Shown here in pieces: positions 423 to 59,491 of a stretch of 64,000 bases of DNA. Positions within the stretch are counted from its first letter, which is position 1; each line of letters opens with the position of its first letter. The DNA lies in the sequence record NC_047880.1; one strand, written 5' to 3'. The notes below the pieces were generated by a model. The model made no database searches and was not told the origin of the DNA. It saw only the letters and a list, made by a program, of their open reading frames with translations. Both the position numbers and the translations under genes were made by a program.

Positions 423-466
423 AACTGTAAACATTGCGAAAGCAAACTCAATATTGAGGATATATA

Positions 467-1729
467 ATGGCACGTGGATTTGATAACATCAGCGACAACA
501 GTAAGCGCGACAGCTTACGTGAGTCGGATATCTTTGAGATTTATCCGTTAGCGAAAAAAGCTGCTGGCGGCTGGGTGTCTATTCGTTTACTTGAAACTGA
601 CCTGCTGCCTATCAAAAAGCACTGGATCAAAATCATGGGCGGCAAAGACAAAGACAAAGAAATCAAAATCCCACGTCTTTGTGTTAGCTTCGACCCTGAC
701 AATGCCGGTAAACCGTTACGCGGTATGAAGTGTCCGTACTGCGGCATTGCTCACGGTAACGATGAATCAGGTGCACCAGCGCAGTACGACTTTAAGTGGT
801 ATGCGCAAGCGATTGTTCGTGATGAACAAGAAACTCAGCCACGCAAATTGCCGAAGCACACGAAGCAAGAGCTGAAAACGAAAAAGAAAGAAAAAGGCTC
901 AGAAAGCTGGACTCCGGTATTTTGTATCCCGCTCACTAACAGTCTGGCTGGCCGTATCAAAGAGCTGGGCGAGCGCAACATTCACAACGTTAAAGACAAA
1001 AAGTCTGGCAAGAAGTCTAAGCAAGCGTTTCAGGTCAATCATCCGAAGTACGGCTGTGACATTGAAATCAAATACAACGCTAAGAAATCTCCTGCAGAGC
1101 GTTACTCAATCGAACGCGGTGAGCATAAGCCGCTGACCGAAGAAGAAAAAGAATATCTGACCTGGGACTTCGAAAACTGGGAAGAGATTTATGATCTTCT
1201 CGGCCGTCTGTCAGAAGCAGATGCTCTTGCTGACTTCAAGAAGATGGACGTTCTCGGCGTCGAACCTGATGATAGCGATGACGACGAAGACGACGATGAC
1301 GATGGCATGTCATTGGGCAAGAAAGGTAAAAAGTCCAAGAAGTCTCGCAAAGACGATGACGACGAAGACGACGAGGATGACGAAGACGAACGACCGTCTA
1401 AGAAATCCAAGAAGTCCAAGCCTTCTAAGTCTAAGCGTCTGCTGGACGATGATGAAGACGACGAAGACGAAGATGATGACGAAGACGATCGTCCATCTAA
1501 AAAGTCCAAGAAGTCTTCTAAGGACAAAAAGTCAGTGAAGTCCAAGAAGTCTAAAAAATCCAGTCGTGACGATGACGACGAAGATGATGAAGACGACGAA
1601 GACGAAAAGCCTAAGAAGAAGAAAAAGAAAACTTCTTCTGCTGACAAGTCTTCCGTGAAGAAGAAGAAAAAGAAATCTTCTGACGACGATGAAGACGAAA
1701 AGCCAAAGAAAAAGAAAAAGAAAAAGTAA
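467..1729 (+). CDS. T4 gp32-like ssDNA-binding protein with a long D/E- and K-rich tail
   Basis: Globular N-terminal ~265 aa with Zn-type Cys/His residues (RLCVSF..KCPYCGIAH) in a gp32-like arrangement; directly upstream of RecA/UvsX; GAGG SD at 456-459. Confidence 0.65.
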   Translation: MARGFDNISDNSKRDSLRESDIFEIYPLAKKAAGGWVSIRLLETDLLPIKKHWIKIMGGKDKDKEIKIPRLCVSFDPDNAGKPLRGMKCPYCGIAHGNDESGAPAQYDFKWYAQAIVRDEQETQPRKLPKHTKQELKTKKKEKGSESWTPVFCIPLTNSLAGRIKELGERNIHNVKDKKSGKKSKQAFQVNHPKYGCDIEIKYNAKKSPAERYSIERGEHKPLTEEEKEYLTWDFENWEEIYDLLGRLSEADALADFKKMDVLGVEPDDSDDDEDDDDDGMSLGKKGKKSKKSRKDDDDEDDEDDEDERPSKKSKKSKPSKSKRLLDDDEDDEDEDDDEDDRPSKKSKKSSKDKKSVKSKKSKKSSRDDDDEDDEDDEDEKPKKKKKKTSSADKSSVKKKKKKSSDDDEDEKPKKKKKKK

Positions 1730-1743
1730 CTGATCGATCACAT

Positions 1744-1771
1744 GGGGTGGCATAAGCTGCCCCATTCTTTT
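1744..1771 (+). terminator. intrinsic terminator
   Basis: GGGGTGGC-ATAA-GCTGCCCC followed by a T-rich tract. Confidence 0.7.
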
Positions 1772-1794
1772 CTCTAATCAGGAATTACCTCTCG

Positions 1795-4287
1795 ATGGCC
1801 AAAGAGAAGAAAGTAAAAGAACCCAAAGCTAAGAAAGCAAAAGCTGTTGCTTCTGATGATGTGGGTGGAAAAGAGATTAAGGTGTTTAGTCTCTCAAGCA
1901 TGATGGACGACACGCTCGATCTCATTGAGAAGAAAACGAAAGTAAGTTCTCAGGATGCAGCGCGTCACGCACCACGTATCTCAACTGGTGTGCTCGCTCT
2001 CGATATGTATCTCGATGGCGGTATTGTACCTGGTGGCTGGTATACATTTGCAGGCGGTGAGCAGTCCTGTAAGTCTACGATGACCATGAGTATCATGGCG
2101 TCTCTGATTCGTCTGAAATATAAAGGGACCAGCGTAGTATTCGACTACGAAGGTTCAACCGATGCTGACTACGTTGCTGGTCAGTTGAAAACGTTTGGCG
2201 TTACTGTCGATCCGAAAACAATCTTCGGTGTGCGCGATACTGATGGTGGTGGCTGGATCATCAAACCTCAGATTCGCTACTACGCACCTGATAACGGTGA
2301 GCGCTTCTTCGATTACATGTCGATGCTGCGTCGTCGTCTGCCGAACAAAATCGTTGAGAAAGACGGCTCTGCGTATTACGTCTTTGAGAACACCAAAGAG
2401 AACGCGAAGAAAGTCGCTGGCTTCTACGATAAGAAGTGGTTCAGTCGTAACAACGAATTCAAAGTACCTGCCGAAGATGCACACATGCAGGCTATGGTTA
2501 TCGTTGACTCCTATCCGGCAATGATGCCTGATGCTGTCGATGATGACGATGGTTCAAAAGCAATGGCAATGCAGGCGCGTATGTTCTCTGACGGTATCAA
2601 ACGTTTCCGTGGCGGTATGCGTCGTAAGATGATGACTATCGTTGGCGTTAACCAGATTCGTCTGAAACCTGCTGTAATGTTCGGCCCGCCTGAGTACGAG
2701 CCGTGTGGTGAAGCGTTGAAGTTCTATTGCTTCGCGTCTGACACTAACATCCGTACTGATCACGGTGTGCTGACTGCACCTCAGATCAAAGAGCTGCTGG
2801 ATGCAGGTAAAGACGTTAGCGTTGAATCGTTCGACGGCTTCCAACAGATCGTTCAGGCGTGGAAAGTCGATGACGCTCCATTCCCTATCGAGCTGTACGC
2901 TGGTGGTCACGCATATGTTGGCAGTGCAGAGCACCGTCAGTTCACGCTGATGCACGACACAACCGATGATGGTATGCGTGTGTTACGTCCTGAATGGAAC
3001 ACACTCAATCAGCTTGCGCAATTCCCAAGCGCCGAAGGCCAGTACGCCGCGTTGCGTGTCGCTAAAGTTGAAGAACTGAAACAGCATACGCCTGACGTGT
3101 ATGATGAATCTTCCGCTGCTGTTAAACGCCTACTCGCTAACTGCGATCCACAAAGCAAGCAACTGCCTCTCGTATCTAAAGGTGATACGACGTATGCAGC
3201 GAACTGCCTCGTGATTGATATGGTTGGTGATAGCACTGACCAGTCAGACTTCGAGCTGTGGGTTAAGCACTTCATGAACATCGGTATCTTGGCGTTTGCT
3301 GATGCTAACGGTATCTGGTTGCCGGGTCTGCATAAGCATGAGCTGGAAGAAGCCTTAGTTCAAGATGCTCTCGGTGCACACGCAGGTATCAGTGATGCTT
3401 CGTCCGCTCGTCAACGTCAGACTCAGATGCTGACTGTGATCGCTGACGTATTCCCTGAACTGACTCGTTACGTCCTCGACTACAACCTGACTAACGAGCC
3501 TATCTATCTGGCTCCTGGTTATGATTTCGCGGAAGCGCTTGACGCAATTCTGCATAAAGAAATCAGCGGTTACGACGACCAGTACGATCTGCTGATGACT
3601 CAGCTTGCGTATATCGAAGACTGGTACACGGTCTGTGACTCAATCGTTCCTGTTCCGTTCTCTCTTCGCGCTCTCGACCGTGATGTTGAGTTCTGGGATG
3701 TTAACGTTGCATCAACCTCAGTCGTTATCACGAACAACTTCGCATCGCATAACAGTGACGTGCGCGTTCGTCTGACTTCTCGCGCTGTGCCTCAGGGCTG
3801 GCCTGTGATGAAAGACGCTCACGGTATCGTCGGCGAGAAGTCTGTTACTGTTGAAGGTGGTACTGACCGCTATCGTTTCATTGCGGCTAAGACTACCAAG
3901 AACAAGATGGGTGGCATCCCGAATCAGCAAACGTGGATGCGTTTGTGGGAAGCAGATGGTAATGGTGAAGCTCGTGGCTTCGACCCAGTGTTTGACTGCT
4001 GGCATTATCTGAAAACCCTGGGCTTGATCAACGGTACGCGCAAGAACTTCAAAATGAAAGCGCCGTGTCCTCTCGCATCTGATGTTAAGATCGATTGGGA
4101 CGAGTTCCGTACTTTGATCAACGGTAACAAGCAACAAATCATTGACGTGTGTCGTAAGCTGAAAGTGAAGAAGCCTCTGTCTTTACGTGCGTGGTGCTTC
4201 AAGTTCGTGCAGTCCACACAGGGCAAAGAGATGTTGAAAGCGTCTATCAGTAAGTCGGCTAAAGTCGAAGACGACGAAGACGATTAA
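1795..4287 (+). CDS. recA: RecA/UvsX recombinase, intein-containing
   Basis: RecA motifs: ISTGVLALD, P-loop GGEQSCKST, VIVDS, QARMFS, NQIR, GEALKFY/SDVR, KNK. Confidence 0.9.
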   Translation: MAKEKKVKEPKAKKAKAVASDDVGGKEIKVFSLSSMMDDTLDLIEKKTKVSSQDAARHAPRISTGVLALDMYLDGGIVPGGWYTFAGGEQSCKSTMTMSIMASLIRLKYKGTSVVFDYEGSTDADYVAGQLKTFGVTVDPKTIFGVRDTDGGGWIIKPQIRYYAPDNGERFFDYMSMLRRRLPNKIVEKDGSAYYVFENTKENAKKVAGFYDKKWFSRNNEFKVPAEDAHMQAMVIVDSYPAMMPDAVDDDDGSKAMAMQARMFSDGIKRFRGGMRRKMMTIVGVNQIRLKPAVMFGPPEYEPCGEALKFYCFASDTNIRTDHGVLTAPQIKELLDAGKDVSVESFDGFQQIVQAWKVDDAPFPIELYAGGHAYVGSAEHRQFTLMHDTTDDGMRVLRPEWNTLNQLAQFPSAEGQYAALRVAKVEELKQHTPDVYDESSAAVKRLLANCDPQSKQLPLVSKGDTTYAANCLVIDMVGDSTDQSDFELWVKHFMNIGILAFADANGIWLPGLHKHELEEALVQDALGAHAGISDASSARQRQTQMLTVIADVFPELTRYVLDYNLTNEPIYLAPGYDFAEALDAILHKEISGYDDQYDLLMTQLAYIEDWYTVCDSIVPVPFSLRALDRDVEFWDVNVASTSVVITNNFASHNSDVRVRLTSRAVPQGWPVMKDAHGIVGEKSVTVEGGTDRYRFIAAKTTKNKMGGIPNQQTWMRLWEADGNGEARGFDPVFDCWHYLKTLGLINGTRKNFKMKAPCPLASDVKIDWDEFRTLINGNKQQIIDVCRKLKVKKPLSLRAWCFKFVQSTQGKEMLKASISKSAKVEDDEDD
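2728..3753 (+). mobile_element. intein (342 aa) in RecA/UvsX
   Basis: Starts CFASDT (block A), has block B-like YVGSAEHRQF, ends VITNNFASHN followed by Ser+1; removing it restores ALKFY-SDVR. Confidence 0.92.
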
Positions 4288-4301
4288 TATAAACCAATAG
4301 A

Positions 4302-4327
4302 GGCGGGCTTCGGCTCGCCCTTTCTTT
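4302..4327 (+). terminator. intrinsic terminator
   Basis: GGCGGGC-TTCG-GCTCGCC followed by CTTTCTTT. Confidence 0.85.
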
Positions 4328-4342
4328 AACAGGAAAAATGAA

Positions 4343-4720
4343 ATGTCAAAAACGTATCTCGCTGATATCGGAAACTTAGGTCTTATCAAACTGGCTATCA
4401 ATGCTGACGTTCGCCCTCTGAATATCGAAACGCTCAAAGAGCTGGACTCTGCTGATCTGCCTACTGACCTGAACCGTGTGTATGTCGTTGGGGCTAACGT
4501 CGCGCCTGCTATGTTCACTGAACTCGAAAGCTACATCGACCCGTCTGAACTCGTTGCTGACGTTGAGAAAGGTAATATCGGCAAGCTGTTCAACCGTGAT
4601 GTTATTCGCAGCGAACAGGTAGACCCGGATATGCTGGCGCTGGTCCTGCTGTTTAGTCCGAACAATGACAGCGCAGCACTCGAAGTTCTCGGCTTTGCTG
4701 CTGTGAAGATTAATCTGTAA
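4343..4720 (+). CDS. hypothetical protein
   Basis: 125-aa ORF with AGGA SD. Confidence 0.8.
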   Translation: MSKTYLADIGNLGLIKLAINADVRPLNIETLKELDSADLPTDLNRVYVVGANVAPAMFTELESYIDPSELVADVEKGNIGKLFNRDVIRSEQVDPDMLALVLLFSPNNDSAALEVLGFAAVKINL

Positions 4721-4794
4721 ATACAACACAGAGCGGGAGATTCACTCTCGCTCACATTCAACTCGATAGACCATACGGTCAGGAGTATTAGACG

Positions 4795-5514: not shown

Positions 5515-5553
5515 CTGAACACAATGCTGTGTGTAGTCTTTGCCAATTGGCAC

Positions 5554-7782: not shown

Positions 7783-7785
7783 TCT

Positions 7786-7827: not shown

Positions 7828-7890
7828 TACGCTAATTTTTAAACGTATAAACGCGCGGTGTTCCGCTACCTCACTCTAAGGATATTCATT

Positions 7891-9570: not shown

Positions 9571-9644
9571 GCGTCTCTGTATGCCGTTAAAAGCACTAAA
9601 AATCGACCTCATATAGCTACATATAATAGACCGCACATCTGCTG

Positions 9645-9703
9645 AACTCTGCATATAATAGGCTAAAATAGCGCTAGATTTGAGGTGCTGAATATGATAT
9701 ACT
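9645..9703 (+). promoter_or_regulatory. boxed sigma70-type promoter, copy 1
   Basis: AACTCTGCATATAATAGGCTAAAATAG, 23 nt, then TG-A-TATACT. Confidence 0.8.
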
Positions 9704-11521: not shown

Positions 11522-12049
11522 ATGAAAAATCAATACCTCATTATTCGCATGAAAGCCGCTGACCTGTACAACAACAAATTTTTAATGCGCGGCTTTGATC
11601 GAAAACGTATCGATCAAGTCATCGGGATCGTTGTCGTTGTAGCTGATGAACACAGCACTTCCCTGAAAGACAACATGTATCACCTGTCCAGCGTTGGTGT
11701 TGAAATGCTAGTTTCTGATACGCAGCAAAAACATGCGCGACTGTTCTGGAATGACGAAGACCGTCGTGTGATACAAGATGGTAAAACACTTCTGCCTGCG
11801 GATTTACGCAAGACGATTGATTCTATGCTGAACAATCGTATGTACCATACAGTAGATACTCAAATACCAGAAGCGTTTCGTGAGTGCCACACTGTGTTTG
11901 ATATTCCAGCAGGCACAGAAATGCGTGAGCGCATAAATAAACGCTTGCACGATATGCAGAAGAAAGACGTTCTGGATAAATTCACTGTAGAAGAATTATT
12001 GCAGCACCTGAAGAAACGTACAGGTGCTAAGATCACACTCGAACTGTAA
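11522..12049 (+). CDS. hypothetical protein
   Basis: 175-aa ORF. Confidence 0.8.
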   Translation: MKNQYLIIRMKAADLYNNKFLMRGFDRKRIDQVIGIVVVVADEHSTSLKDNMYHLSSVGVEMLVSDTQQKHARLFWNDEDRRVIQDGKTLLPADLRKTIDSMLNNRMYHTVDTQIPEAFRECHTVFDIPAGTEMRERINKRLHDMQKKDVLDKFTVEELLQHLKKRTGAKITLEL

Positions 12050-12105
12050 ATCAAAACTAACCAACAGCCTTGCGCAAGCGGGGCTTTTCTGATCTGGAGA
12101 ATGCT

Positions 12106-12793: not shown

Positions 12794-12837
12794 CGTTTCT
12801 GTAAATACTGCTCACGAACAAACAAAAGGTAATCACT

Positions 12838-14762: not shown

Positions 14763-15077
14763 ATGATTCAACCTAAATACGAATGGCGTATGCGCTTCGA
14801 AAACCGTGAAGGTAATCTCAACTTACCTGAGTTACCTCCTGATATCGAAATCTATATCAAAGACAACCTCACGCTTCAACGCATCCCTGTCTTAGTTAAC
14901 CGCACAACAATCGTAAGCGTTAACGGTAAGACGTGTGGTTGTTTACAGTGGCTCGATACTGCTAATCTACTCGTTTGGTCTTCATTTGAGATCTATCGTT
15001 TTACGCTGTTTGTCGAACGAGTCACACGCGAAACTGCATCTGAGACAGCCCTGCAATCTGAACAACTCTGCATATAA
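14763..15077 (+). CDS. hypothetical protein
   Basis: 104-aa ORF with GGAG SD. Confidence 0.7.
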   Translation: MIQPKYEWRMRFENREGNLNLPELPPDIEIYIKDNLTLQRIPVLVNRTTIVSVNGKTCGCLQWLDTANLLVWSSFEIYRFTLFVERVTRETASETALQSEQLCI

Positions 15078-15122
15078 TAGGCTAAAATAGCCGTTCACTT
15101 CTAGACGCTCCTATGCTATAAT
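15064..15122 (+). promoter_or_regulatory. boxed promoter, copy 3
   Basis: AACTCTGCATATAATAGGCTAAAATAG, 23 nt, then TG-C-TATAAT. Confidence 0.85.
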
Positions 15123-23619: not shown

Positions 23620-23877
23620 ATGGCTGTAGGCTTTGGACCTGCTGATGGTGTTCAAGATACCATCCACGCAAACTTGATGAATGAACTTGATCGCGTTCGT
23701 TCAGAACTTCAAGGTAGTGGTAGCGATTATTGCCATGACTGTGACGCAGAGATTCCAGTCATGCGCAAGCTTGCAATGCCGAACGCTATCTACTGTGTAA
23801 GCTGTCAATCAGATCACGACGGCAGCGCTCACGTTTCCTACAACCGACGTGGCTCGAAAGACTCACAGTTGAGGTAA
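23620..23877 (+). CDS. ybiI: DksA/TraR C4-type zinc-finger protein (YbiI-like)
   Basis: CHDCDAEIP..R..A.P...CVSCQ, and C-terminal YNRRGSKDSQLR matching E. coli YbiI as recalled. Confidence 0.9.
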   Translation: MAVGFGPADGVQDTIHANLMNELDRVRSELQGSGSDYCHDCDAEIPVMRKLAMPNAIYCVSCQSDHDGSAHVSYNRRGSKDSQLR

Positions 23878-24922: not shown

Positions 24923-24973
24923 TCGATACGATTCTGTAAATCCCCTCTATAACTGTTGAGTAAGGAAAAGAAA

Positions 24974-26850: not shown

Positions 26851-27825
26851 ATGAAGTACGGATTCGCCTGCAAGCTGATTGATAACAAGGGCAAACAGCC
26901 TTTCCCTAATCGCAGTATCAGCTACAAACACTTCGCACCGTTAACTGACGAAGACCAGAGACTCAAACTGATTGAGATCGCTACGCACAACCTGACAATG
27001 TTGCTCGCTATGATTCACTATGTCGGACGTCTGCGTATGGACTTGCGTATGTTCCGCATAACAAGCGAACTGCTTCCTCTGTACACGCATCCGAAAGTCA
27101 GTGCATTGTATCAAGAGCCTCACATACGATCATTGATTGAACCAATGCTTGCTGAGTGTGGTCGTGCTGCGCGTACACGTCAAGTTCGTTTGTCGTTTCA
27201 CCCAGGCCAGTTCACCGTACTTGCATCTGACCGACCAGAAGTTGTCGTGTCTGCAATTGAAGAACTTGAGTACCACGCGTACTGTGCATATCAGATGGGA
27301 TACGGCAGAAAGTTCCAAGACTTCAAAATCAACATTCATCTGAGTGGCCGACTCCGTGCAGAAGGTTTCCGTACTGCGTTCAAACTCCTGTCACCTCACT
27401 GTCGTCGCATGTTGACCGTTGAGAATGACGAGATCACCAGCAGCATCGAAGACGTGTTAACTCTAGGTGACTTGTGTCCGATCGTCTTGGACGTGCATCA
27501 TCATTGGGTAATGACTAACGAATACATTCTGCCTACAGATGATCGCGTTAAGCGCGTGATAGACTCGTGGCGTGGCGTTCGACCTGTTGCACACTATTCA
27601 GTGTCTCGACCTGAGCATGTACCGTCACGTGGTATGCCCGATCAGAACAAGCTGCAAGCTAACAGAATGCAGTTACGCGCACACGCTGAATACTATCACA
27701 ATGAAGACGTAAACGACTGGGTCCGTACTTTCTCTGATTTCGACATAATGTGCGAGTCAAAAGCTAAAAATCTAGCTCGCTTAAAATTGGTGTATTTTGA
27801 GTCAACTCTGCATATAATAGGCTGA
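26851..27825 (+). CDS. uvsE: UV DNA-damage endonuclease (UvsE/UvdE)
   Basis: MFRITSELLP, RLSFHPGQF, LTVENDE, VLDVHHH, HYS and DIMCESKAKNLA motifs. Confidence 0.93.
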   Translation: MKYGFACKLIDNKGKQPFPNRSISYKHFAPLTDEDQRLKLIEIATHNLTMLLAMIHYVGRLRMDLRMFRITSELLPLYTHPKVSALYQEPHIRSLIEPMLAECGRAARTRQVRLSFHPGQFTVLASDRPEVVVSAIEELEYHAYCAYQMGYGRKFQDFKINIHLSGRLRAEGFRTAFKLLSPHCRRMLTVENDEITSSIEDVLTLGDLCPIVLDVHHHWVMTNEYILPTDDRVKRVIDSWRGVRPVAHYSVSRPEHVPSRGMPDQNKLQANRMQLRAHAEYYHNEDVNDWVRTFSDFDIMCESKAKNLARLKLVYFESTLHIIG

Positions 27826-27862
27826 AATACGGCTTGTGCTGTAGGTCGCACCGTGATAAACT
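27804..27862 (+). promoter_or_regulatory. boxed promoter copy
   Basis: AACTCTGCATATAATAGGCTGAAATAC, 23 nt, then TG-A-TAAACT; TTGTGC -35. Confidence 0.8.
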
Positions 27863-28930: not shown

Positions 28931-29156
28931 CGCTACCCATCAGTATTACGGCGAAGCTTACGCTGGGACATATCTTAAAGATATCGACATGGGCGTAACG
29001 CTGAACCAAGCGGAGTTCAAGGACTTCGCCTCAGCCAAAACTTGTGCAGACAAACTGCATGAGGTTTGCGATATAGGCTGGATTGTCTACAACGCATTTT
29101 CTGAAATGCCGATGTACGACACTCGGACGTCTACTGACGAGTCTGTAAATACATAA
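28908..29156 (+). CDS. hypothetical protein
   Basis: GGAGG SD, 82 aa. Confidence 0.75.
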   Translation: MARYHVFSATHQYYGEAYAGTYLKDIDMGVTLNQAEFKDFASAKTCADKLHEVCDIGWIVYNAFSEMPMYDTRTSTDESVNT

Positions 29157-29226
29157 CAGGCCCGCCTACATCTTCCAGTGTGATGCTTACGGGCTTCACG
29201 CAAATTCACTTAAATGAGGTTTTACT

Positions 29227-35588: not shown

Positions 35589-36530
35589 ATGACTAAAATG
35601 GTTACTATGCCGTGGGAAACTTCTGAGCAACGCAATGACTTTTTCTCTACGCAAGTGCGTCAGTTAGACTTACATCCTGTGTGGAGCTATGTCGAAGTGC
35701 AAAACAATCCTCAGTGGAAAGGTGACCCGCTGCTTCACCACATGCACTATCATTCGACAGAACACATGAAGCAGGTAACTGCACTTGCATTGTGGTTGCT
35801 GACAGAAGAAATGCAGTACGCATGGCAGTATGAAAACGGTGCGCTGCCGCTGGCCGTCGCGTGTATGTTCCACGATATGCACCACTCACTTGGTCGTCTT
35901 AATGATTCAGGCAATATTCTCATCGCCAAAGATGCTTTCAAAAAGTATCTGACCTTCTGTACAGACCAACGTATTATTGATCAGCAAGAGATCATTCTTG
36001 AACTGATTGGCATTACCGAATTCCCTTACATGAAGAACAGACAGCCGAAGAATCTGATTGAGCGCTGTATTCGTGATGCAGATATTCTCTACGGTATGCA
36101 GGATGACGCAATGGACGTAGTGCTATTTGCTCTGCGTCGTGAAGTGAATCGCAACGTCAATACTAATACGCGCTACAACCAAGAACAGTGGGCTACAGGC
36201 CGTGTTGACTTCCTCATGTCCGTTGAGATGTACACACCTACTGCGAATGCAATCATGGCCTGGGCATTAGCTGAGGATAACGATCACAACCATCAATCTA
36301 AGATTGATAGCTGGGCGAAAGAGAATGTATACTTCCGTGATACGACTGCACACCAGCTAAAAGCTAATGACGTGTTGTTCATTGATACGCAGGAAGACAG
36401 TACTCCGAAACGCCGTCTGATCGAAAGTGTTGAGACAGTTCATCCATACCTGAACATATACTTCCACGACGGCTCTGCTATCTCGCTGCGTGATGGAGAG
36501 AGCTGCGTGGTATGCGAAAGACGCAAATAA
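35589..36530 (+). CDS. HD-domain phosphohydrolase
   Basis: YHSTEH ... FHDMHH ... IRDADIL. Confidence 0.85.
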   Translation: MTKMVTMPWETSEQRNDFFSTQVRQLDLHPVWSYVEVQNNPQWKGDPLLHHMHYHSTEHMKQVTALALWLLTEEMQYAWQYENGALPLAVACMFHDMHHSLGRLNDSGNILIAKDAFKKYLTFCTDQRIIDQQEIILELIGITEFPYMKNRQPKNLIERCIRDADILYGMQDDAMDVVLFALRREVNRNVNTNTRYNQEQWATGRVDFLMSVEMYTPTANAIMAWALAEDNDHNHQSKIDSWAKENVYFRDTTAHQLKANDVLFIDTQEDSTPKRRLIESVETVHPYLNIYFHDGSAISLRDGESCVVCERRK

Positions 36531-36531
36531 T

Positions 36532-36575
36532 AGGCTGAAATAGAGGTTCAGCAAACACCTCATATGTGATATAAT
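36532..36575 (+). promoter_or_regulatory. boxed promoter copy
   Basis: AGGCTGAAATAG, 23 nt, then TG-A-TATAAT. Confidence 0.85.
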
Positions 36576-40510: not shown

Positions 40511-40515
40511 CTATC

Positions 40516-40574
40516 AAGTCTGCACAAAATAGGCTGAAATAGCGGTATCAATAAAAGCCTCAATATGATACAAT
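40516..40574 (+). promoter_or_regulatory. boxed promoter copy
   Basis: AAGTCTGCACAAAATAGGCTGAAATAG, 23 nt, then TG-A-TACAAT. Confidence 0.85.
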
Positions 40575-42391: not shown

Positions 42392-42395
42392 TGTG

Positions 42396-42454
42396 AAGTC
42401 TGCATAAAACAGGCTAAAATAGAGGTTGAGACATATATCAACACCTGTTATACT
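42396..42454 (+). promoter_or_regulatory. boxed promoter copy driving a non-coding segment
   Basis: AAGTCTGCATAAAACAGGCTAAAATAG, 23 nt, then TG-T-TATACT; TTGAGA -35. Confidence 0.85.
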
Positions 42455-44247: not shown

Positions 44248-44332
44248 GCTGTACTCACTGTAAACTGATATGATAGCGGTCTATGAAGGCCGCTATACTT
44301 TGACTAATCGCGCTGATTGAGGAATCACAACT

Positions 44333-50795: not shown

Positions 50796-51644
50796 ATGTC
50801 AGAAGCAAAGCAAGACAGTATTGACCACGGTGCAAAGCTCGCTGAATTGATTGGCAAGCAAAGCGCAGACTACGACAAGCTGCATTACAGCTATGTTGAA
50901 GTACGTGGCAAGAACATGGACTTGGAAGAAGAACTCGCCGAGTCCACCCGCCGTGAAACGAAGCTGCGCCTCGAAGCACGTAACACGCAGCGTCTTAACC
51001 GCGACCATGCGATTCGCCTCGAACGTATCATCGAGCAAGAACGTGGTGATAAGGTTGATGCGCAAAACGAAAATGCTCGTCTGCTTGTTCAGATCGATAA
51101 GCTGAATGAAACTGTAAAACAGAAGCATGTAGAGCAAGCGTCTGTTGTTCTGCAAATGATAATGTCAGAATCTGTCAGGCAGTTCGGTAATGTTGTTCAA
51201 GCTGTCTCGCACATGTTCGTCAATCGTCGTAAGTCAAAAGCCGACGCAGCCATGCAATCAACATTGCTGATGGACTATGTGACTAAACAGCCTTCACTGT
51301 ATCGCACTGTTGCGCAGTATTACAACTCAATCAATCTGCCTGTACCAACCGCAGCCGCGTTGAAGTTGCAAATGATTGAGCACGTTAAACAGAACGCGCA
51401 TCTGTATCTCAAAGACCCTGATATTCAAGCCTATCGTGAAGCATTGATTATCATGGTTACGCAACCGACTTCGCAAGTTAATCGCAGCCGCGTTATGACC
51501 AGTGTGCGTGATGGTTTCGACTACATCAATGTTTTCGATGCTGGGTTCGACGTAGCTATTCTGTCGGACAATACTTCGTGGGCAGCAACACTGTCTGACT
51601 CGCTGTTAGATATTTCGGGTCATCTTATCAGCGCGAATTTTTAA
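50796..51644 (+). CDS. coiled-coil protein
   Basis: Heptad-rich N-terminal half; AAGGA SD. Confidence 0.8.
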   Translation: MSEAKQDSIDHGAKLAELIGKQSADYDKLHYSYVEVRGKNMDLEEELAESTRRETKLRLEARNTQRLNRDHAIRLERIIEQERGDKVDAQNENARLLVQIDKLNETVKQKHVEQASVVLQMIMSESVRQFGNVVQAVSHMFVNRRKSKADAAMQSTLLMDYVTKQPSLYRTVAQYYNSINLPVPTAAALKLQMIEHVKQNAHLYLKDPDIQAYREALIIMVTQPTSQVNRSRVMTSVRDGFDYINVFDAGFDVAILSDNTSWAATLSDSLLDISGHLISANF

Positions 51645-51739
51645 TCTGTAAAAAATATTCGTAAAGTAATCTGTAAACACTAATTGAAGTTCACACTGAG
51701 CAACTCGCTCAACCGCATAAATCTGGAGCATTAAAGAAA

Positions 51740-52300
51740 ATGGCAAAAGCTACTAAAGGTACTAATCTGGTTCCGACCATTGTTTCCCGTATCGCAAAGA
51801 AAGCTGGTTCTATCGGAACTACCAAAGTTAAGCCAACTGATCTGCCGCACGACATTCTGATTGAAAGCGTTCACGCTTCTGAAATCGTCGGTTTCATCAC
51901 AGACCGTTCTGCTACCAGCGTAACGATTCGTCACAAACGTGGCCACGGTTCTTCTGCTCAAATCGTTTCTACTTTCGGTCCTGGTCAACTGCTGACTGTT
52001 CTGGGTGAAGCCGGTTCTCACGGTCAAGTCCGTGCAATCGTGACTGCGCCAGTGTGTGAGCTGAAAGGTTACACTGTTAAATTCGACGGCGCAATCATCA
52101 TCGCCACCTCAATCGAAACTGGCGAAGTGATTAACGTTAACACCAACCTGCCGGGCTACACTGTTCGCGCTACTGTTAACGAAAACGCTGCTGCTAAAAA
52201 GTACGGCACTGCTGCGCCAGTTAAAAACAAAAAAGTTGAAAAGTCTGACAAAGCCGGTAAATCTGCGAAAGCGATTAAAGGCGGCAAAGTAAAAAAGTAA
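51740..52300 (+). CDS. beta-rich protein with Lys-rich tail
   Basis: GGAG SD, downstream of tandem CTGTAAA motifs; ends KNKKVEKSDKAGKSAKAIKGGKVKK. Confidence 0.85.
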   Translation: MAKATKGTNLVPTIVSRIAKKAGSIGTTKVKPTDLPHDILIESVHASEIVGFITDRSATSVTIRHKRGHGSSAQIVSTFGPGQLLTVLGEAGSHGQVRAIVTAPVCELKGYTVKFDGAIIIATSIETGEVINVNTNLPGYTVRATVNENAAAKKYGTAAPVKNKKVEKSDKAGKSAKAIKGGKVKK

Positions 52301-52452
52301 CGGCGTCTGACGAAGACTTTTAATAGTCTCTGACGAATCTGTAAAGAATGATTATGCAGCAACATAAAAAATGTGTTGCTGCCGAATACAAACGAATCTG
52401 TAAATCTTAATTGAAGCAATAACGCTTCTCGAACTCAAAGGAAATTCGTATC

Positions 52453-53232
52453 ATGGCTAAAGCTAAATCCGCAAACGCAGCAACTCTGGTTCTGGCATCT
52501 ATCTTCGGTGTTGTTGTTGAGAACGCTTCGAACGAAGAGATTCAAAAGCTGCTGGCAGACGCGGGTCTGACTGTATCCGGTGGTAAAGTTGTTAAAGGCA
52601 AAGCTGCTAAAGCTGAAAAGCCTGCTGCTAAAGGTAAAGGCAAGAAAGCTAAAGCGCCGACCGTTGCTGAAATCGTTGCAGCGGTGAAGGAAGAAGAAGA
52701 ACTGGACATCTCTGCTGTGAGCGAAGATGATCTGCGCGCCGCAGTTGTGAAAGCTAAACTGGCCGCTGCCAAGAAAGCAAAAGCGCTGGACGAAGACGAT
52801 CTGCGCGAACTGCTGAACGAAGCAATGGGCGTCGAGTCAGAGGATGACGAAGACGACGAAGAAGAGGACGACGAAGAAGAAGAGGACGAAGACGACTCTG
52901 ACGACGAAGACGAAGACGACTCTGATGAAGAGGACGACGAAGACGACGAAGAAGAGGATGAAGACGACGAGGAAGAAGAAGAGGACGAAGACGACGAAGA
53001 CGAAGACGAGGACGAAGATGAACTCGACCTTGATTCGCTCGACGAAGACGAACTCCTGGCCCTCGTGATCGAACACAAGCTGGCGCCTAAGGCGAAAGCT
53101 AAGAAAATGGACGAAGACGAACTGCGCGAATTGTGCGAAGGTCACTTCGGCGGTGATGACGAAGAAGAAGAGGACGAAGACGACGAAGACGAAGACTTCG
53201 ACGATGAAGACGAAGACGAAGACGACGAATAA
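52453..53232 (+). CDS. acidic protein with poly-D/E tracts and two copies of a ~40-aa helical module
   Basis: About 60 consecutive residues almost all D/E between the modules; AAGGA SD. Confidence 0.9.
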   Translation: MAKAKSANAATLVLASIFGVVVENASNEEIQKLLADAGLTVSGGKVVKGKAAKAEKPAAKGKGKKAKAPTVAEIVAAVKEEEELDISAVSEDDLRAAVVKAKLAAAKKAKALDEDDLRELLNEAMGVESEDDEDDEEEDDEEEEDEDDSDDEDEDDSDEEDDEDDEEEDEDDEEEEEDEDDEDEDEDEDELDLDSLDEDELLALVIEHKLAPKAKAKKMDEDELRELCEGHFGGDDEEEEDEDDEDEDFDDEDEDEDDE

Positions 53233-54110: not shown

Positions 54111-54608
54111 ATGACATCCGATGAACTTAACAAACATGAAGCAGGCGTTATGTCTCGGCTCGATGCGATTCCAAAGGCATCGGCACCACAAAAGAAACCT
54201 TCTTACTTCGAACTCGTATCACTCCGCATCGAAGCGTCTGGCCGTCTGGCTCGCGCTCTCTTCACTCTGCATTCTGCAAACGTTATCAGCATGAACTTAG
54301 CGCATGACTCGGCCGAGCAGGAAGCTCTGACAGTTGCTGAAAAGCACTGGGCTGATATCTGCAACGGCCTTGTGCCTGTACAAGACGGCACAGGTACAGT
54401 CAAGCTACGCGCTGATCTTCCTGCATGTATCGAAGCGTTTCGCATCGTCGTTATGGAATGCGCTCAACGTGCTGCACTCGATAAAGAATGCAGAGAGAAG
54501 ATGGCTCATGGCGAAGGCTTTAAGCTGCTGACTCAATCCACTCAACTCTCCCTTCCTGTTAAACATACCTGCAATGAGGACTGCGATCATGGCACAGAAG
54601 CTATCTGA
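54111..54608 (+). CDS. hypothetical protein
   Basis: SD in the loop of TTGAA-GGAAG-TTCAA, ATG at 54111. Confidence 0.75.
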   Translation: MTSDELNKHEAGVMSRLDAIPKASAPQKKPSYFELVSLRIEASGRLARALFTLHSANVISMNLAHDSAEQEALTVAEKHWADICNGLVPVQDGTGTVKLRADLPACIEAFRIVVMECAQRAALDKECREKMAHGEGFKLLTQSTQLSLPVKHTCNEDCDHGTEAI

Positions 54609-55353
54609 GCAAATCAACCGTTACTTCAATCTCATGGAATCAATCCGTAAGCAACTGTTTCGTGTTATGCCTATCTCTAACCGTTACTTGTGCATCGTGA
54701 GTTTCAGTACGCAGTATCAAGCGGTCATGAGCGATCTGGTGAGCAAAGAAAGTCTGCTGCCTGTTAAGCTGCTTGATGGTCTGACGGGTTCTGAGCTTGT
54801 TGCTTACGGCACAATCATGCAGGCAATCGAACAGTGGGTTGCTTCTGGTATGCAAGAGGATTTCCCTCTCGACCAGCGTCAGGATGTTTATTCCGAGTAT
54901 CGTCGTCTTACTACAGACGCAGAGCAGGAATCAACTGAACCTCAAGTCGCAGTGGTTCGTGCTGATACTCATACACGCGCGGCTATCTTACGCATGTCAT
55001 TCGCCTCGCTCGTTGAAGCTGCATCCGACCTTGGTATCTGCCACGATGTTCAGACGAAAGATCTCAAACACAAAGATCTGCAAGCTGCCGTTCTTAAACA
55101 CTTAGGCATGGCTCAGCCTGATGCGGAAGAACGTGATGCACAGGATATCGACAATATCAAAACAACGATTCTGTCTGCTACCGATGATGAACTCCGTGTT
55201 ATGTGTGCTGAGGCTCATGTAGTCGCTCGTAAAGAACTGCGCCTTGTCGGTCGTGACGAGATGATCAGCCTGATGTTCATCCACCATGACATTGAAGAAG
55301 AAGACGATGACTGCGGATGTGGCGAACTAAGCTGCATCTGTCACGCTCGCTAA
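54589..55353 (+). CDS. hypothetical protein with two short helical modules and a Cys-rich tail
   Basis: GAGG SD, ATG at 54589; ends DCGCGELSCICHAR. Confidence 0.8.
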   Translation: MAQKLSEQINRYFNLMESIRKQLFRVMPISNRYLCIVSFSTQYQAVMSDLVSKESLLPVKLLDGLTGSELVAYGTIMQAIEQWVASGMQEDFPLDQRQDVYSEYRRLTTDAEQESTEPQVAVVRADTHTRAAILRMSFASLVEAASDLGICHDVQTKDLKHKDLQAAVLKHLGMAQPDAEERDAQDIDNIKTTILSATDDELRVMCAEAHVVARKELRLVGRDEMISLMFIHHDIEEEDDDCGCGELSCICHAR

Positions 55354-55410
55354 GTCTGCATAAACGAGGACGAAACGTGAGTAGCGTTTAGTACCAGTCT
55401 GTGCTATAAT
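55352..55410 (+). promoter_or_regulatory. boxed promoter copy upstream of the topoisomerase genes
   Basis: AAGTCTGCATAAACGAGGACGAAACGT, 23 nt, then TG-C-TATAAT. Confidence 0.8.
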
Positions 55411-55480
55411 GTCATGAGACAAGTAGTGTCTGAATATGCTAATATCGAGTGGTAACGCTACTCACTTGGAGAATACGAAA

Positions 55481-57520
55481 ATGGCCAAAGCGCCTAAAGC
55501 GGTTAAAGTTAAAAAATCATCGGGTGGCGATGGAAGCCAAGAAGGCTTCGTCATTGCAGAAGGCCTTGATGGTATTCGTTTGAATCCCGGAATGTATATG
55601 GGCGAACGTGGTTCTGACATGGCTTATCGCGCAGTCAAGGAACCTACTGATAACGTCTACGATGAATTGATGGCGGGCCGCAACAAAGTTCTTGAGGTTG
55701 TTATCGACTATGACAACGACCTGAACGTTGTAGCGGATATGGCAAAAGGTATTCCGACTGACTTCAAGAAATTGAAAGACGGTTCGAAAGAAACGATCAT
55801 GACCGCAGCATTCAGTCGCGCACATGCTGGTGGCAAGTTCAACGACCAAGCATATAAGACCTCTGCTGGTACTCACGGCGTAGGCGTTGCAGCACTGAAC
55901 GCAATCTCAAGCAAACTCCGCGTATGGTCTATGTACAAAAGTGGTTGTGCATATCAGATGTGGGAATGCGGTGTTGCTAAGTCAGGCAAAGATCCGAAGC
56001 AAGTCAAATCCGTCGATAAAGATGTTATGTCGCTGCTGCGTGAAAAGAAACACAGCAAGTACGGAACGATTGTTGCGTGGACTCTCGACCAGACCGTCGT
56101 ATCTGCTGACGTGCAACGTGGCAAGAAGCTCGCAAAGAACTATCGTCATGCTGAGCCAGACCCTGCACGTATCGGCGAGTGGCTGCGTAACATGTCGCTG
56201 CTCAACCCAGGTTTCGAAGTACGCCTGACGCTTATCAAGAAAGGCAAGCGCAAAGAATTCACGTTCCACAACAAGAAAGACCTCGCACATATCGTTAAGA
56301 CGATGGTCGAAGAACGCGAACTGGAAACAGTCGGCAAGCCGTTCGTATTCAAATCAGATAATATCACTGCTGCACTTGTGTGGACGAATCATCCAGACAC
56401 TGATAACTTCCTGTCTTTCGTTAACACAAGCCCGACAGTCGATGGTGGCTGGCACGTTGTAGGTTTCCGTGATGCGCTGTTTGATGCTATCAAGCCGTAC
56501 ATGAAAGAGCCTAAAGCTGCGAAAGGCAAGAGCAAGAAGAAACTTGCATTCAAGCAAGAAGACTTGCTTATCGGTCTGACTGGTATGTTCGACTGGCGTA
56601 TGCACGGCGCACAGTACACCTCACAGGTTAAAGACAAGTTGGCCTCGCGTATCGAGAAAGATGTTTACGAGTTGATGAAAGACCAGCTTGTGAAATATTT
56701 CAAAGACAACAAGAAAGTTGCAACGACGATTATCAAGCGCGCCGAAGCAATGTCTAAAGGCCGTGATGAACTGTCTGCTGTCGTCAAGTCTATGGCTGAC
56801 ACGAAGAAGAAGCTGAAAGGTAACGCACTGCCTGCTGATCTTATCACTGCTCTCAAGTGTAAGCCGCATGAACGTGAACTGATTATCGTGGAAGGTGATT
56901 CAGCAGGTGGTACAGCGAAACACGCACGTAACCCTGACTATCAGGAAGTAATGCTTGCTGGTGGTAAACCGCTGAACGGTCTGAAAGCAACTCTCGCGGC
57001 CGTGTTGGTTCACAAAGAAGTCCAGTCAATGCTGGTCTCTCTCGGCGCTGACTTGAAATCGTTAGACCCGAAAGCTGAGTTCCCGATACTGAGCACGAAG
57101 AACTTGCGTGTGGGTAACTTGCTTCTCTTAATGGATGCCGACCCAGATGGTTTCCATATCGCAACGTTGTTCATGGGCGTTATCTATCGCTTGCTGCCTG
57201 ACTTGATGAAAGAAGGTCGCGTCTGGATTGTTGATGCACCTCTGTATAACGTGATGCACAAAGGCATTCACTACGGTGGCATGACATTCGATGAATGCCG
57301 TGCAATTGCACCAGCAGCAATCAAAGACAAAGAGATTGTACGTGCAAAAGGCTGGGGTGAAGTTGAGCCTGATGTGCTTGAAGCGATTGCATTCAATCCG
57401 AAGACTCGTCGCTTGATTCGCGTTAACCCATTCGCTAGTGTTGAACAAGAACGCTGGTTCCGTGGTGTTGTCGCAGAAGATGCTGTGCACCGTCGTCGCT
57501 TACTTGGTCTGGAGTCTTAA
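55481..57520 (+). CDS. gyrB: type IIA topoisomerase B subunit (GyrB/ParE-like)
   Basis: GHKL motifs EPTDNVYDE, DMAKGIP, HAGGKF, GTHGVG; TOPRIM motifs EGDSA, DADPDG, KGWGE. Confidence 0.93.
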   Translation: MAKAPKAVKVKKSSGGDGSQEGFVIAEGLDGIRLNPGMYMGERGSDMAYRAVKEPTDNVYDELMAGRNKVLEVVIDYDNDLNVVADMAKGIPTDFKKLKDGSKETIMTAAFSRAHAGGKFNDQAYKTSAGTHGVGVAALNAISSKLRVWSMYKSGCAYQMWECGVAKSGKDPKQVKSVDKDVMSLLREKKHSKYGTIVAWTLDQTVVSADVQRGKKLAKNYRHAEPDPARIGEWLRNMSLLNPGFEVRLTLIKKGKRKEFTFHNKKDLAHIVKTMVEERELETVGKPFVFKSDNITAALVWTNHPDTDNFLSFVNTSPTVDGGWHVVGFRDALFDAIKPYMKEPKAAKGKSKKKLAFKQEDLLIGLTGMFDWRMHGAQYTSQVKDKLASRIEKDVYELMKDQLVKYFKDNKKVATTIIKRAEAMSKGRDELSAVVKSMADTKKKLKGNALPADLITALKCKPHERELIIVEGDSAGGTAKHARNPDYQEVMLAGGKPLNGLKATLAAVLVHKEVQSMLVSLGADLKSLDPKAEFPILSTKNLRVGNLLLLMDADPDGFHIATLFMGVIYRLLPDLMKEGRVWIVDAPLYNVMHKGIHYGGMTFDECRAIAPAAIKDKEIVRAKGWGEVEPDVLEAIAFNPKTRRLIRVNPFASVEQERWFRGVVAEDAVHRRRLLGLES

Positions 57521-57521
57521 T

Positions 57522-57824
57522 ATGCGCGGAACTAACTTTCCTGTAGTACATGGCACCGAGCACTGGGCAATTCCTTTGCTCGACTATCCAGACATTGTAT
57601 CACCTGAGTTGAGTGCGAAGCTCGATGCGTCACTTGCAGAGATTCGTCAGATTGCTGCACGGAGTGGAAAAGAAATGAAACAGAACGAAGCATTCATCGG
57701 TATTCAAAGCACAGCACAGAAGAAAGATGTTGTTGCCGTGCGTGTGCTCAAAGCTCGCAAGCCTGCCACTGACTCAATGTGTGTGATGGCGAAACTTGCA
57801 GCACTACCTAAAGGAGCGCAGTGA
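57522..57824 (+). CDS. hypothetical protein between the topoisomerase subunits
   Basis: GGAG SD, ATG at 57522, GTGA overlap with the A subunit. Confidence 0.7.
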   Translation: MRGTNFPVVHGTEHWAIPLLDYPDIVSPELSAKLDASLAEIRQIAARSGKEMKQNEAFIGIQSTAQKKDVVAVRVLKARKPATDSMCVMAKLAALPKGAQ

Positions 57825-59476
57825 TGGCGATTAAGCCGAAGAAAGTCAAAGTAGTGAAGTCCACTGCTGTCGCTAAAGTAAAGCCTGCGAAGTTGAAAAC
57901 GAAAGTAGTTGCTGTCGATGACCTGCCGAAGAAAAAGAAAAAGAAAAGCAGTGACGTTGCAACTTCGACTGGTGTTATGACCTCGTTGTATCCGATGATT
58001 GGCCAAGACCCGAAGTTGATTCGTGACGAGAACCTCGCGGACTTCACTAAACGCGCTCTGTTCCAGTATGGTTCATACGTTGTTGAAGACCGAGCTATCG
58101 CTGACTATCGTGACGGCCTCAAGCCTGTGCATCGTGCGTTACTCTGGTCGCTGTGTGACTTAGGCTTACGTCCTGGTGGTGCGTTCAAGAAAGCTGCTCG
58201 TACTGTTGGTGATGCCTTAGGTAAGTATCACCCACACGGTGACGCTGCGTGTTACGGTGCGATGGTAACGATTGCAAACACAGTGCCGCCTGCTGTTGCT
58301 GGTCAAGGTAACTGGGGTGACCCTGTAGCACCTGCCGCTGCGATGCGTTACACCGAAGCGAAAATGAGTAAGTTCGCTGGTAGCTTCCTGCTCGACACTG
58401 ACTACCTCGAAGTAACGCCGATGGTGGACAACTTCTCGAACGATATGAAGCTGCCTCTGTATCTGCCTGCTCTGTTGCCGTACATGCTGTTCAACGGTAG
58501 TGTGCCTGCGCCAGCATACGGCGTGAAGTGTGGTAACCCATCGTTCAGCTTTACGTCTGTTGCAAAAGTCGTGTGCGATATGCTGGAAGGCAAAGAGTAC
58601 GATGCGAAGAAGCTCGCTAAGACTCTCAAGATCAACCACGAGTACGGATGTAAAGACGTAAGCTCTGATGCTGATTACTTGAATCTGATGACAACTGGTC
58701 GCGGCAAAGTTACATACGAACCGCTGATGAAGATTGACGAGAAGAACAAGACAGTCACCGTTCAGACCTACGTGCCACTGGGCATGGCTAACACAGCAGG
58801 CATCACGAAGAAGCTGATGAAGATTGCTGAGTGGCAGGGTGTTGTGTCTGCATCGAATGCGAGTTCGAAGAAGAACAAAGACTCTGGTCCATGGGGCGCA
58901 GCGTTCGCAATCAAGTGTCGCGGTAGTGAAGACCAGTTGTATGAGATCGCGACCAAGGTTCAGAAAGAAGTAACAGCCGCTGTGAACTACTCGCTCGGTG
59001 TAACGATTCGTCGTGCTGATGCAGCGAACAAGTTTAAATACCTGTCGTATGTCGAATACTTCAAAGCGTGGATTGCGTATCGCATTAAGCTGGAAGTTGC
59101 GATGCTCAAGAACAAGATGGCCAAAGCAGAGAAAGCCTTGCACTTGCAGCAAGTATATCTCTGGGCAGTAGACAACATGGACAAGCTGCTCAAAGCTCTG
59201 CCTAAAGTGTTAGTCGCTGCTGACCCTGACGTTGCGCTGTCGAAAGCCTGTAAGCTGCCCGTTGAAGACGCGAAGATTATCCTCGATCGTCAAGTTCGTA
59301 AGCTTGCGAAACTTGAACGAGCTGGTCTGTTAGCCAAGATCAAGGAAATCAAATCTGAGATCGCTGAGTATAAAGCAGGCCTGAAAGAGCCTGGAAAATA
59401 TGCCGCTGCTGGTACTGCCGCAAAAGTTAAGGCGTATCTGAAATCGCCTGATGATAAGATGCCAGTCGGTCTGTGA
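57821..59476 (+). CDS. gyrA: type IIA topoisomerase A subunit (GyrA/ParC-like), without a C-terminal pinwheel domain
   Basis: RAIADYRDGLKPVHR, KYHPHGD, AAAMRYTEAK (catalytic Tyr), P..LFNG. Confidence 0.93.
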   Translation: MMAIKPKKVKVVKSTAVAKVKPAKLKTKVVAVDDLPKKKKKKSSDVATSTGVMTSLYPMIGQDPKLIRDENLADFTKRALFQYGSYVVEDRAIADYRDGLKPVHRALLWSLCDLGLRPGGAFKKAARTVGDALGKYHPHGDAACYGAMVTIANTVPPAVAGQGNWGDPVAPAAAMRYTEAKMSKFAGSFLLDTDYLEVTPMVDNFSNDMKLPLYLPALLPYMLFNGSVPAPAYGVKCGNPSFSFTSVAKVVCDMLEGKEYDAKKLAKTLKINHEYGCKDVSSDADYLNLMTTGRGKVTYEPLMKIDEKNKTVTVQTYVPLGMANTAGITKKLMKIAEWQGVVSASNASSKKNKDSGPWGAAFAIKCRGSEDQLYEIATKVQKEVTAAVNYSLGVTIRRADAANKFKYLSYVEYFKAWIAYRIKLEVAMLKNKMAKAEKALHLQQVYLWAVDNMDKLLKALPKVLVAADPDVALSKACKLPVEDAKIILDRQVRKLAKLERAGLLAKIKEIKSEIAEYKAGLKEPGKYAAAGTAAKVKAYLKSPDDKMPVGL

Positions 59477-59491
59477 TTAATCTGTAAATAC

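Follow-up and report, generated by a model that had tools for sequence, protein, structure and literature searches.

The last 64 kb of the genome of the jumbo Erwinia phage vB_EamM_Y3 (NC_047880/KY984068; 261,365 bp; genus Sasquatchvirus), i.e., bases 197366 to 261365 of the + strand, form the window of 64,000 nucleotides (nt) analyzed here, and the element in question is a short box built on CTGTAAA, which we call the A-box. The box probably represents a phage-specific class of single-box promoters for replication genes that would be read via a phage sigma-like protein. The promoter reading itself is well supported by the sequence, namely by the enrichment, orientation, spacing, gene class, and conservation of the box. 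Window numbering is used in the feature rows. The gene map consists of the 333 RefSeq coding sequences (CDSs) of Y3, each of which was checked for clean translation; the record holds CDS features only and no regulatory features. All genes of the window lie on the + strand, and in the genome the + genes run from 185 kb through the end of the record to 44.6 kb, while the − genes occupy 44.6 to 185 kb.

Occurrence and orientation of the A-box

CTGTAAA occurs 18 times in the window (17 copies on the + strand and 1 on the − strand), compared with a shuffle mean of 9.2. Eleven of the + copies touch the 6,056 nt of non-coding DNA (9.5% of the window) versus 6 in the 57,944 nt of coding DNA (odds ratio 17.5, p 4e-8), which bears out the large intergenic enrichment claimed in an earlier note on this DNA. 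The densities are likewise unequal in the whole Y3 genome, where 33 of the 62 copies touch non-coding DNA, which makes up 5.8% of the genome, and 29 are coding (p 1e-24); 58 of the 62 are co-oriented with the local genes. In a k-mer ranking of intergenic versus coding DNA that was blind to the claim, (A)ATCTGTAAATA was the top non-terminator motif; CTGTAAATA (21 versus 9) and ATCTGTAAA (16 versus 3) lead at k = 9, and among shorter k-mers the only rivals to the A-box words were terminator words and CTAATTT. The earlier guess of about 4 copies inside CDSs was close, the count being five + copies well inside CDSs (46177, 48093, 48276, 51112, and 63733). About three gene ends of the form CTG TAA A are expected by chance according to our own estimate.

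Twelve sites had been listed as copies at gene boundaries. CTGTAAA is present on the + strand at every one of them, and 10 of the 12 are non-coding or overlap an upstream stop codon, while the copy at 29143 falls in the last 14 nt of gp291. These sites are given below with a leave-one-out flank score in bits, the mean of which over the sites is +4.2.

422..440, + strand: A-box aaaaCTGTAAAca, just past the gp241 stop codon and 35 nt before the start of the gene for the single-stranded DNA-binding protein (SSB); flank score +6.0
About 440, + strand: A, the predicted start site of the 422..440 box
4712..4730, + strand: A-box aatCTGTAAAta, overlapping the gp244 stop codon, 73 nt before gp245; flank score +8.3
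4731-4753, + strand: strong stem-loop (z −6) that lacks a T run, in what would be the 5' leader
12044..12050, + strand: CTGTAAA from the Leu-stop end of gp254, with a terminator-like hairpin next; flank score −2.8; probably a chance copy
12796..12814, + strand: A-box tttCTGTAAAta, right behind a terminator and 32 nt before gp257; flank score +5.0
24931..24949, + strand: A-box attCTGTAAAtc, 33 nt before gp283; flank score +0.5
29140..29158, + strand: A-box agtCTGTAAAta, within the last codons of gp291 and 77 nt before gp292; flank score +3.6
44258..44264, + strand: CTGTAAA with the non-consensus flanks tcaCTGTAAAct and a hairpin next; flank score −9.2; doubtful
51643..51686, + strand: two A-boxes (51646 and 51671) before gp322, the second followed by TAATTGAAG
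52336..52413, + strand: two A-boxes (52339 and 52398) before gp323, sharing ACGAATCTGTAAA, the second followed by TAATTGAAG
59479..59497, + strand: A-box aatCTGTAAAta, the best-scoring site, 5 nt after the topoisomerase gene gp329; flank score +10.6

The sites at 12044 and 44258 are probably chance copies, since both have poor flanks and each is followed by a terminator-like hairpin; a sigma70-like −35/−10 pair also overlaps the site at 44258 on its downstream side. The identical 13-mer reported at 52339 and 52398 is present. The hairpins said to follow several copies are real at 4731-4753, 44273, and 434 and weak at 29158, but they are absent at 12806 and 24941, and a hairpin is therefore not a general feature of the A-box.

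Anatomy of the A-box and proposed promoter layout

Alignment of 30 intergenic Y3 sites gives the full consensus aaTCTGTAAATA, and a conserved A at +15, seven bases past the box, is found in 21 of the 30 sites, so that the extended consensus reads aaTCTGTAAATA-N5-tAt. The 77 sites pooled from Y3, JA29, Lu11, GR7B, and PaBG show the same succession of aaaT, the core, TA, and then tAt with the A at +15. No −35 partner was found by position or by k-mer in the 30 Y3 sites or the 77 pooled sites, and the information content of the 30 Y3 sites is nil from −45 to −6. The distances from the box to the start codon cluster at 27 to 43 nt. Six boxes lie directly downstream of a strong terminator, and many others are 1 to 5 nt from the preceding stop codon or overlap it. 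Judged by its sequence, this is the layout of a −10-type promoter, the predicted start being the conserved A about 7 nt further on and the expected leader 20 to 36 nt long.

Some of these features would also suit a site that acts in the RNA, i.e., a processing or stability site at which a host or phage endoribonuclease cuts polycistronic transcripts to give defined 5' ends: the box lies strictly on the sense strand at a fixed distance from start codons, it is often located at the stop codon of the preceding gene, and some copies stand upstream of a terminator-like hairpin. We regard this explanation as very improbable, because the six boxes just past strong terminators would find little read-through RNA to cut, copies in divergent regions (e.g., the one before the primase gene gp227) have no upstream gene on their strand, and an AT-rich 12-mer with a purine 7 nt further on has the shape of a −10 element and its start site. 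Still less probable is an operator role, in which the box would serve a DNA-binding regulator of the phage (repressor or activator) and not be a promoter core. Short conserved words before co-regulated genes can be operators, and a further conserved word, TAATTGAAG, follows two of the boxes; however, the A-box is asymmetric, strictly oriented, and without a partner half-site, and the remaining 27 to 43 nt before the start codon contain no other promoter-like element.

Genes behind the A-box and the other candidate promoter classes

The A-box precedes the genes for NAD ligase (gp148), DNA polymerase (gp162 and gp173), recombination endonuclease (gp186), clamp loader (gp209), primase (gp227), the sigma factor gp241, and SSB (gp242), as well as a DNA methyltransferase gene and a ParB-like gene. 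Several small genes of the window lie behind an A-box too, and two boxes each are found before the lysine-rich gp322 and the very acidic gp323. The observation that the box stands before the SSB gene and acidic or histone-like genes thus holds, with gp242 and the pair gp322/gp323 as the genes concerned. On the promoter reading, the A-box would drive genes of DNA replication, recombination, and nucleotide metabolism, many small genes of the window, and gp241. Judged by sequence, about 35 to 40 replication-class promoters of this kind are likely in Y3.

Two A-boxes per gene suggest that gp322 and gp323 are strongly expressed. gp322 (51740-52300) has a Lys-rich tail at its C-terminal end, and in gp323 (52453-53232) about half of the residues are Asp and Glu, which are arranged in long runs after a Lys/Ala-rich N-terminus; the two might act as a DNA mimic or as a nucleoid-associated pair. 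TAATTGAAG occurs at 51678-51692 and 52405-52419, in each case three bases past the A-box (motif position +10). pEa_SNUABM_45 has kept this word, which may be an additional regulatory site that gp322 and gp323 share.

A second single box, a-CG-CTAATTT-t, has 19 intergenic versus 3 coding copies in the genome. At 14 of 16 sites (− arm), the distance to the start is 13 to 42 nt; the box is often behind a terminator, has a G at +13, and precedes virion and lysis genes, among them those for tail sheath (gp135), PAAR protein (gp115), and endolysin (gp197), together with gp111, gp149, and gp184. In JA29, it precedes 10 of 13 orthologs of Y3 CTAATTT genes versus 3 of 158 other genes. CTAATTT is a candidate late promoter class. 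Two copies were seen in the window:

7832..7838, + strand: CTAATTT box (cgCTAATTTt), behind a terminator and 52 nt before gp249
7469: further copy of the CTAATTT box

The earlier description of the A-box as a middle/late class can accordingly be kept for its first half, the box being associated with replication and recombination ("middle") genes, but "late" does not fit, because the virion and lysis genes carry CTAATTT instead.

A third element, (a)CTCTGCATATAATAGGCTRAAATAG, of about 25 to 35 nt, has six + copies in the window among small genes of unknown function:

9641-9671, 15060-15090, 27800-27830, 36513-36543, 40512-40542, and 42392-42422, + strand: (a)CTCTGCATATAATAGGCTRAAATAG, each with a sigma70-type −35 a few bases on

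A TATAAT-like −10 lies 17 nt past this −35, e.g., TTCACT-17-TATAAT before gp263. From their sequences, the CTCTGCATATAATAGGCTRAAATAG sites are probably an early promoter class with a conserved upstream element, to which other sigma70-like sites would also belong. Taken together, the proposed order would comprise three tiers: sigma70-type promoters (early), A-box promoters for replication (middle), and CTAATTT promoters for virion and lysis genes (late).

Conservation in related phages

Yoloswag, JA29, Lu11, and PaBG share the order of the sigma, SSB, and recombinase genes with Y3, and Vibrio phage GR7B does so for the most part. In each of these phages except PaBG, the gap between the sigma gene and its downstream neighbor contains CTGTAAA; PaBG has CTGTCAATA there. 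Among 33 IMG/VR loci found by means of the sigma protein, 30 have CTGTAAA just past the sigma stop codon in diverged flanks, which is the position of the 422..440 box; the loci with the kept box reach down to 37% protein identity, and 2 of the 3 without CTGTAAA have GTGTAAA. In Pseudomonas phage Peetri, the sigma protein of which is 24% identical, CTGTAAA lies 34 nt before the SSB gene. At closer range, pEa_SNUABM_45 (about 77% DNA identity) has the boxes at 51646, 51671, 52339, 52398, and 59482 unchanged within spacers that have otherwise diverged.

Counts of CTGTAAAT exceed those of the reversed control in Lu11 (48/6), Yoloswag (40/8), JA29 (39/7), GR7B (14/3), and PaBG (3/1); PaBG has about eight intergenic CTGTAAA copies. 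Intergenic statistics based on a gene caller were not used for the GC-rich Lu11, and the gene map of this phage was taken from the GenBank features. The box is also kept gene by gene: among reciprocal best hits in JA29, it precedes 13 of 22 orthologs of Y3 box genes versus 7 of 149 others (p 2e-9), and the corresponding numbers in Lu11 are 4 of 8 versus 2 of 43 (p 0.004). PhiXhv-12 shows no enrichment of CTGTAAA (25 copies versus 23 in the control), for which reason the box may have changed in this phage.

The box is thus conserved across phages whose proteins have diverged to 24 to 37% identity, which makes it a marker for annotating the clade and shows a very stable pairing of sigma and promoter.

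Two sigma-like proteins of phage Y3

Two genes of Y3 code for sigma-like proteins, and both are also found in JA29, Lu11, PaBG, GR7B, Peetri, and PhiXhv-12. The window features that concern them are as follows:

3..422, + strand: 3' end (last 140 codons) of gp241 (genome 196750-197787, 345 amino acids), annotated as phage sigma factor, PHROG 17569
62473..63603, + strand: gp332, sigma-like, with an N-terminal extension of 140 amino acids
59523-59551, + strand: sigma70 extended −10 promoter TTGTTA-17-TATAAT with TG upstream, conserved, at the head of the operon gp330-gp333, which includes gp332

gp241, the gene of which ends at window base 422, had been overlooked in the earlier note. In the PDB, its family profile matches only SigA region 2 (best E 0.01), with the Y, WW, and T of regions 2.3-2.4 aligned, and its match to Pfam Sigma70_r2 is below the cut-off. 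The predicted structure (predicted local distance difference test [pLDDT] score of 74) resembles residues 110 to 446 of sigma70, with Z-scores of 12 to 15.7 over 222 to 226 residues, and on this model gp241 is sigma70-like across region 1.2, the non-conserved region, and region 2. No region 3 or 4 was recognized in the whole-protein model, in which the structural matches end at residue 234 and residues 230 to 295 have low confidence, and Sigma70_r4 (PF04545) has no match anywhere in the Y3 genome. The gp241 gene has its own CTGTAAATA box 34 nt upstream; such a box also precedes the gene in Yoloswag and JA29, and in Lu11 the gene is part of box-rich operons.

gp332 had been proposed to be sigma-like, and three lines of evidence agree with this. 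PaBG gene 112, which like gp332 lies between the topoisomerase and DnaB genes, is its ortholog (E 1e-27 at 26% identity) and is a possible sigmaE-like factor according to the authors of the PaBG paper, in which the sigma proteins are discussed and the box motif is not. In the predicted structure (pLDDT 66), residues 142 to 252 resemble the sigma2 domain of extracytoplasmic function (ECF) sigma factors, with RpoE as the best match (Z-score = 9.8, root-mean-square deviation = 2.3, number of aligned residues = 85), followed by SigH, SigR, SigL, SigK, SigE, SigW, and sigma28, and residues 285 to 376 form a helix bundle similar to sigma domain 4 (Z-score = 6.2). The top 14 rows of the VIA-align fold search are all sigma factors, but Foldseek gives an E of only 0.33. 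The language-model neighbors of gp332 are viral clusters carrying Sigma70_r2. By its predicted fold, gp332 does look like an ECF-type sigma factor. Sequence searches with gp332 against Pfam, NCBIfam, and the PDB gave nothing significant, and a profile-profile comparison of the gp332 and gp241 families was not significant either. A weak match to RadB (E 0.048) was dropped after the fold search.

The operon of gp332 is headed by sigma70-type promoters in the relatives as well, i.e., a perfect TTGACA-17-TATAAT in GR7B and TTGACT-18-TACAAT in PaBG, and by a conserved extended −10 TATAAT in Y3 and pEa_SNUABM_45.

Candidate readers of the A-box

In the mechanism that we propose, aaTCTGTAAATA would be the −10-like core of a phage-specific single-box promoter, to which the host core RNA polymerase would be brought by one of the two phage sigma-like proteins and not by host sigma70 alone. 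As both genes occur in every relative checked, the box cannot be assigned to either protein by co-occurrence. That gp332 is the reader is a tentative proposal, the same role for gp241 is, if anything, a shade more doubtful, and some other reader is unlikely. We lean slightly toward a division in which gp332 reads the A-box and gp241 reads CTAATTT. In known cascades, the next sigma factor is made by the preceding promoter class, and the gp241 gene lies behind a CTGTAAATA box, which would make gp241 the next sigma factor in the preceding class; the sigma70-type promoters at the head of the gp332 operon likewise favor gp332 as the reader of the A-box. gp241 is favored for CTAATTT because TAATTT fits the TAnnnT of a sigma70-type −10 and the region 2 residues that match it are retained in gp241. 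The resemblance of TGTAAA to the −10 word of sigmaE would be a clue for gp332. By analogy with T4 gp55, on the other hand, gp241 would be the natural reader of any single-box promoter, as it has a sigma2 module only.

The division just described could amount to a relay of two sigma factors without a −35 element, although the full scheme is rather speculative. Host sigma70 promoters would yield an early, ECF-like gp332, which would read CTGTAAATA and thereby turn on the replication genes and gp241, and gp241, as a sigma70 derivative cut down to regions 1.2-2, would then read CTAATTT before the virion genes. If true, the relay would be found across a broad clade of jumbo phages infecting Erwinia, Dickeya, Yersinia, Pseudomonas, and Vibrio, and an ECF-like sigma factor acting on a single box would be unusual.

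A different source of recognition would be the unmodified host sigma70 holoenzyme, or sigma70 with a small phage co-factor, reading the box as an odd −10 (TAAATA with TG adjoining) while the phage sigma-like proteins serve other promoters. T-12 and A-11 can be placed on the box, TG is just upstream, and the conserved A is at the right distance; the motif is alike in phages of Erwinia, Dickeya, Pseudomonas, and Vibrio, the hosts of which have sigma70 factors with nearly identical DNA-binding parts; and both sigma genes are downstream of a box, so that something else must fire the box first. We nonetheless find this explanation quite unlikely, since the box lacks both a T at −7 and a −35, ordinary sigma70-type promoters with a −35 and TATAAT exist elsewhere in the genome, and the box is always accompanied by the two phage sigma genes.

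Several points count against a phage promoter read by one of these proteins. No −35 element is visible for the sigma4-like domain of gp332, and gp241 would need to read its own promoter. A terminator-like hairpin lies between the box and the next gene at three boxes (genome 34954; window 12044 and 44258), an odd arrangement for a promoter. The 7-mer CTGTAAA alone is insufficient, because for about 18 of the 29 coding copies the next co-oriented start is over 120 nt away. A search of sequencing runs gave no RNA run containing phage Y3, and the literature gave no mapped start site for any relative; a full-text search with the motif word returned unrelated primer matches only. The enrichment, orientation, and conservation described above nevertheless lead us to prefer the phage-specific promoter class.

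Other features of the window

A perfect palindrome, CTCAATATTGAG, at 446-460 overlaps the Shine-Dalgarno sequence of the SSB gene. The Erwinia and Dickeya relatives have kept it, with ACTCAATATTGAGGA present in most of the first 20 loci. By analogy with the autoregulation of T4 gene 32, it may be a translational operator or a hairpin that masks the Shine-Dalgarno sequence. The spacer between the SSB and UvsX genes (1729-1795) contains a GC-rich terminator hairpin, the position of which is kept in Y3, Yoloswag, JA29, Lu11, and PaBG, with differing sequence.

In the 340-nt spacer before gp330, a block of about 110 nt (59700-59810) is nearly identical in pEa_SNUABM_45, while its surroundings have diverged. 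The block contains two hairpins, has no Rfam match, and reaches a fold z-score of only −1.7; a small RNA or a leader structure is conceivable. gp279 (23620-23877) is a DksA/TraR-type C4 zinc-finger protein (Pfam E 9e-9) and possibly binds the secondary channel of RNA polymerase; it may have a role in phage control of host transcription.

Comparison with known systems

The closest counterpart is found in Pseudomonas phage Lu11, the record of which (NC_017972) carries 16-nt "regulatory/promoter" features with the remark "putative middle/late promoter". All five of the features viewed begin with CTGTAAAT, and one of them stands before the SSB gene; separate features of the same record are noted as similar to the early consensus TTGACA-N15-17-TATAAT. 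The corresponding reference is Adriaenssens et al. 2012 (J Virol 86:6369). In Y3, too, CTGTAAAT begins a sense-strand motif of about 16 nt that is intergenic, near gene starts, and at syntenic positions, and the two phages share the core (CTGTAAATACATAGTA, CTGTAAATACAGTGTA, and CTGTAAATGGTGAGTA), its orientation, and its location upstream of the SSB gene, which adjoins the sigma gene. They differ in that the sigma proteins are only 37% identical and the upstream flank is aaaa in Lu11 versus aaT in Y3. The motif class has therefore been on record since 2012 as a prediction for Lu11 and is not new; no experimental test of the Lu11 label was found in the literature.

The resemblance to T4 late promoters, which are TATAAATA sequences read by gp55 with gp33 and the gp45 clamp, extends to 7 of 8 bases (TGTAAATA versus TATAAATA), with a single box and no −35 in both. 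As in T4, the box would lie in the −10 region with a start predicted a few bases on, and gp241, like gp55, has a sigma2-type module only. On the other hand, the Y3 box precedes replication and recombination genes and not the late genes that define the T4 class, its invariant G makes it a word distinct from the T4 late box, and gp241 carries a sigma70 region 1.2 and an insert resembling the non-conserved region. Neither gp241 nor gp332 has homology to gp55 that is detectable by sequence, and no gp55 model was searched; chain 7d7d_F of the gp45-dependent T4 transcription activation complex resembles gp332 only at a Z-score of 6.4.

Cascades of phage sigma factors acting on the host core RNA polymerase are known from SPO1 (gp28 followed by gp33/34) and phiEco32 (gp36). 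Y3 resembles these phages in that sigma70-family proteins of the phage would redirect the host core enzyme in temporal order, with gp241 behind an A-box as the next sigma factor in the preceding class. Both phage-specific classes of Y3 are single boxes, whereas those of SPO1 are bipartite (−35 and −10), and one of the sigma-like proteins of Y3 is ECF-like by fold only. Since the use of a phage sigma factor on the host core enzyme is a familiar strategy, the surprise is modest. The value of the analysis lies in a testable map of three candidate promoter classes and two sigma-like proteins. Y3 and its relatives (PaBG/Lu11 group) are candidates for the biocontrol of fire blight and soft rot.

The −10 element of E. 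coli sigmaE-type ECF factors is TGTCAAA in the structure of sigmaE region 2 with DNA. The core TGTAAA is one base apart from TGTCAA, and the best fold matches of gp332 are ECF sigma2 domains, with 2mao among the matches; in contrast, ECF promoters need a −35 of the AAC type, and the Y3 box has none.

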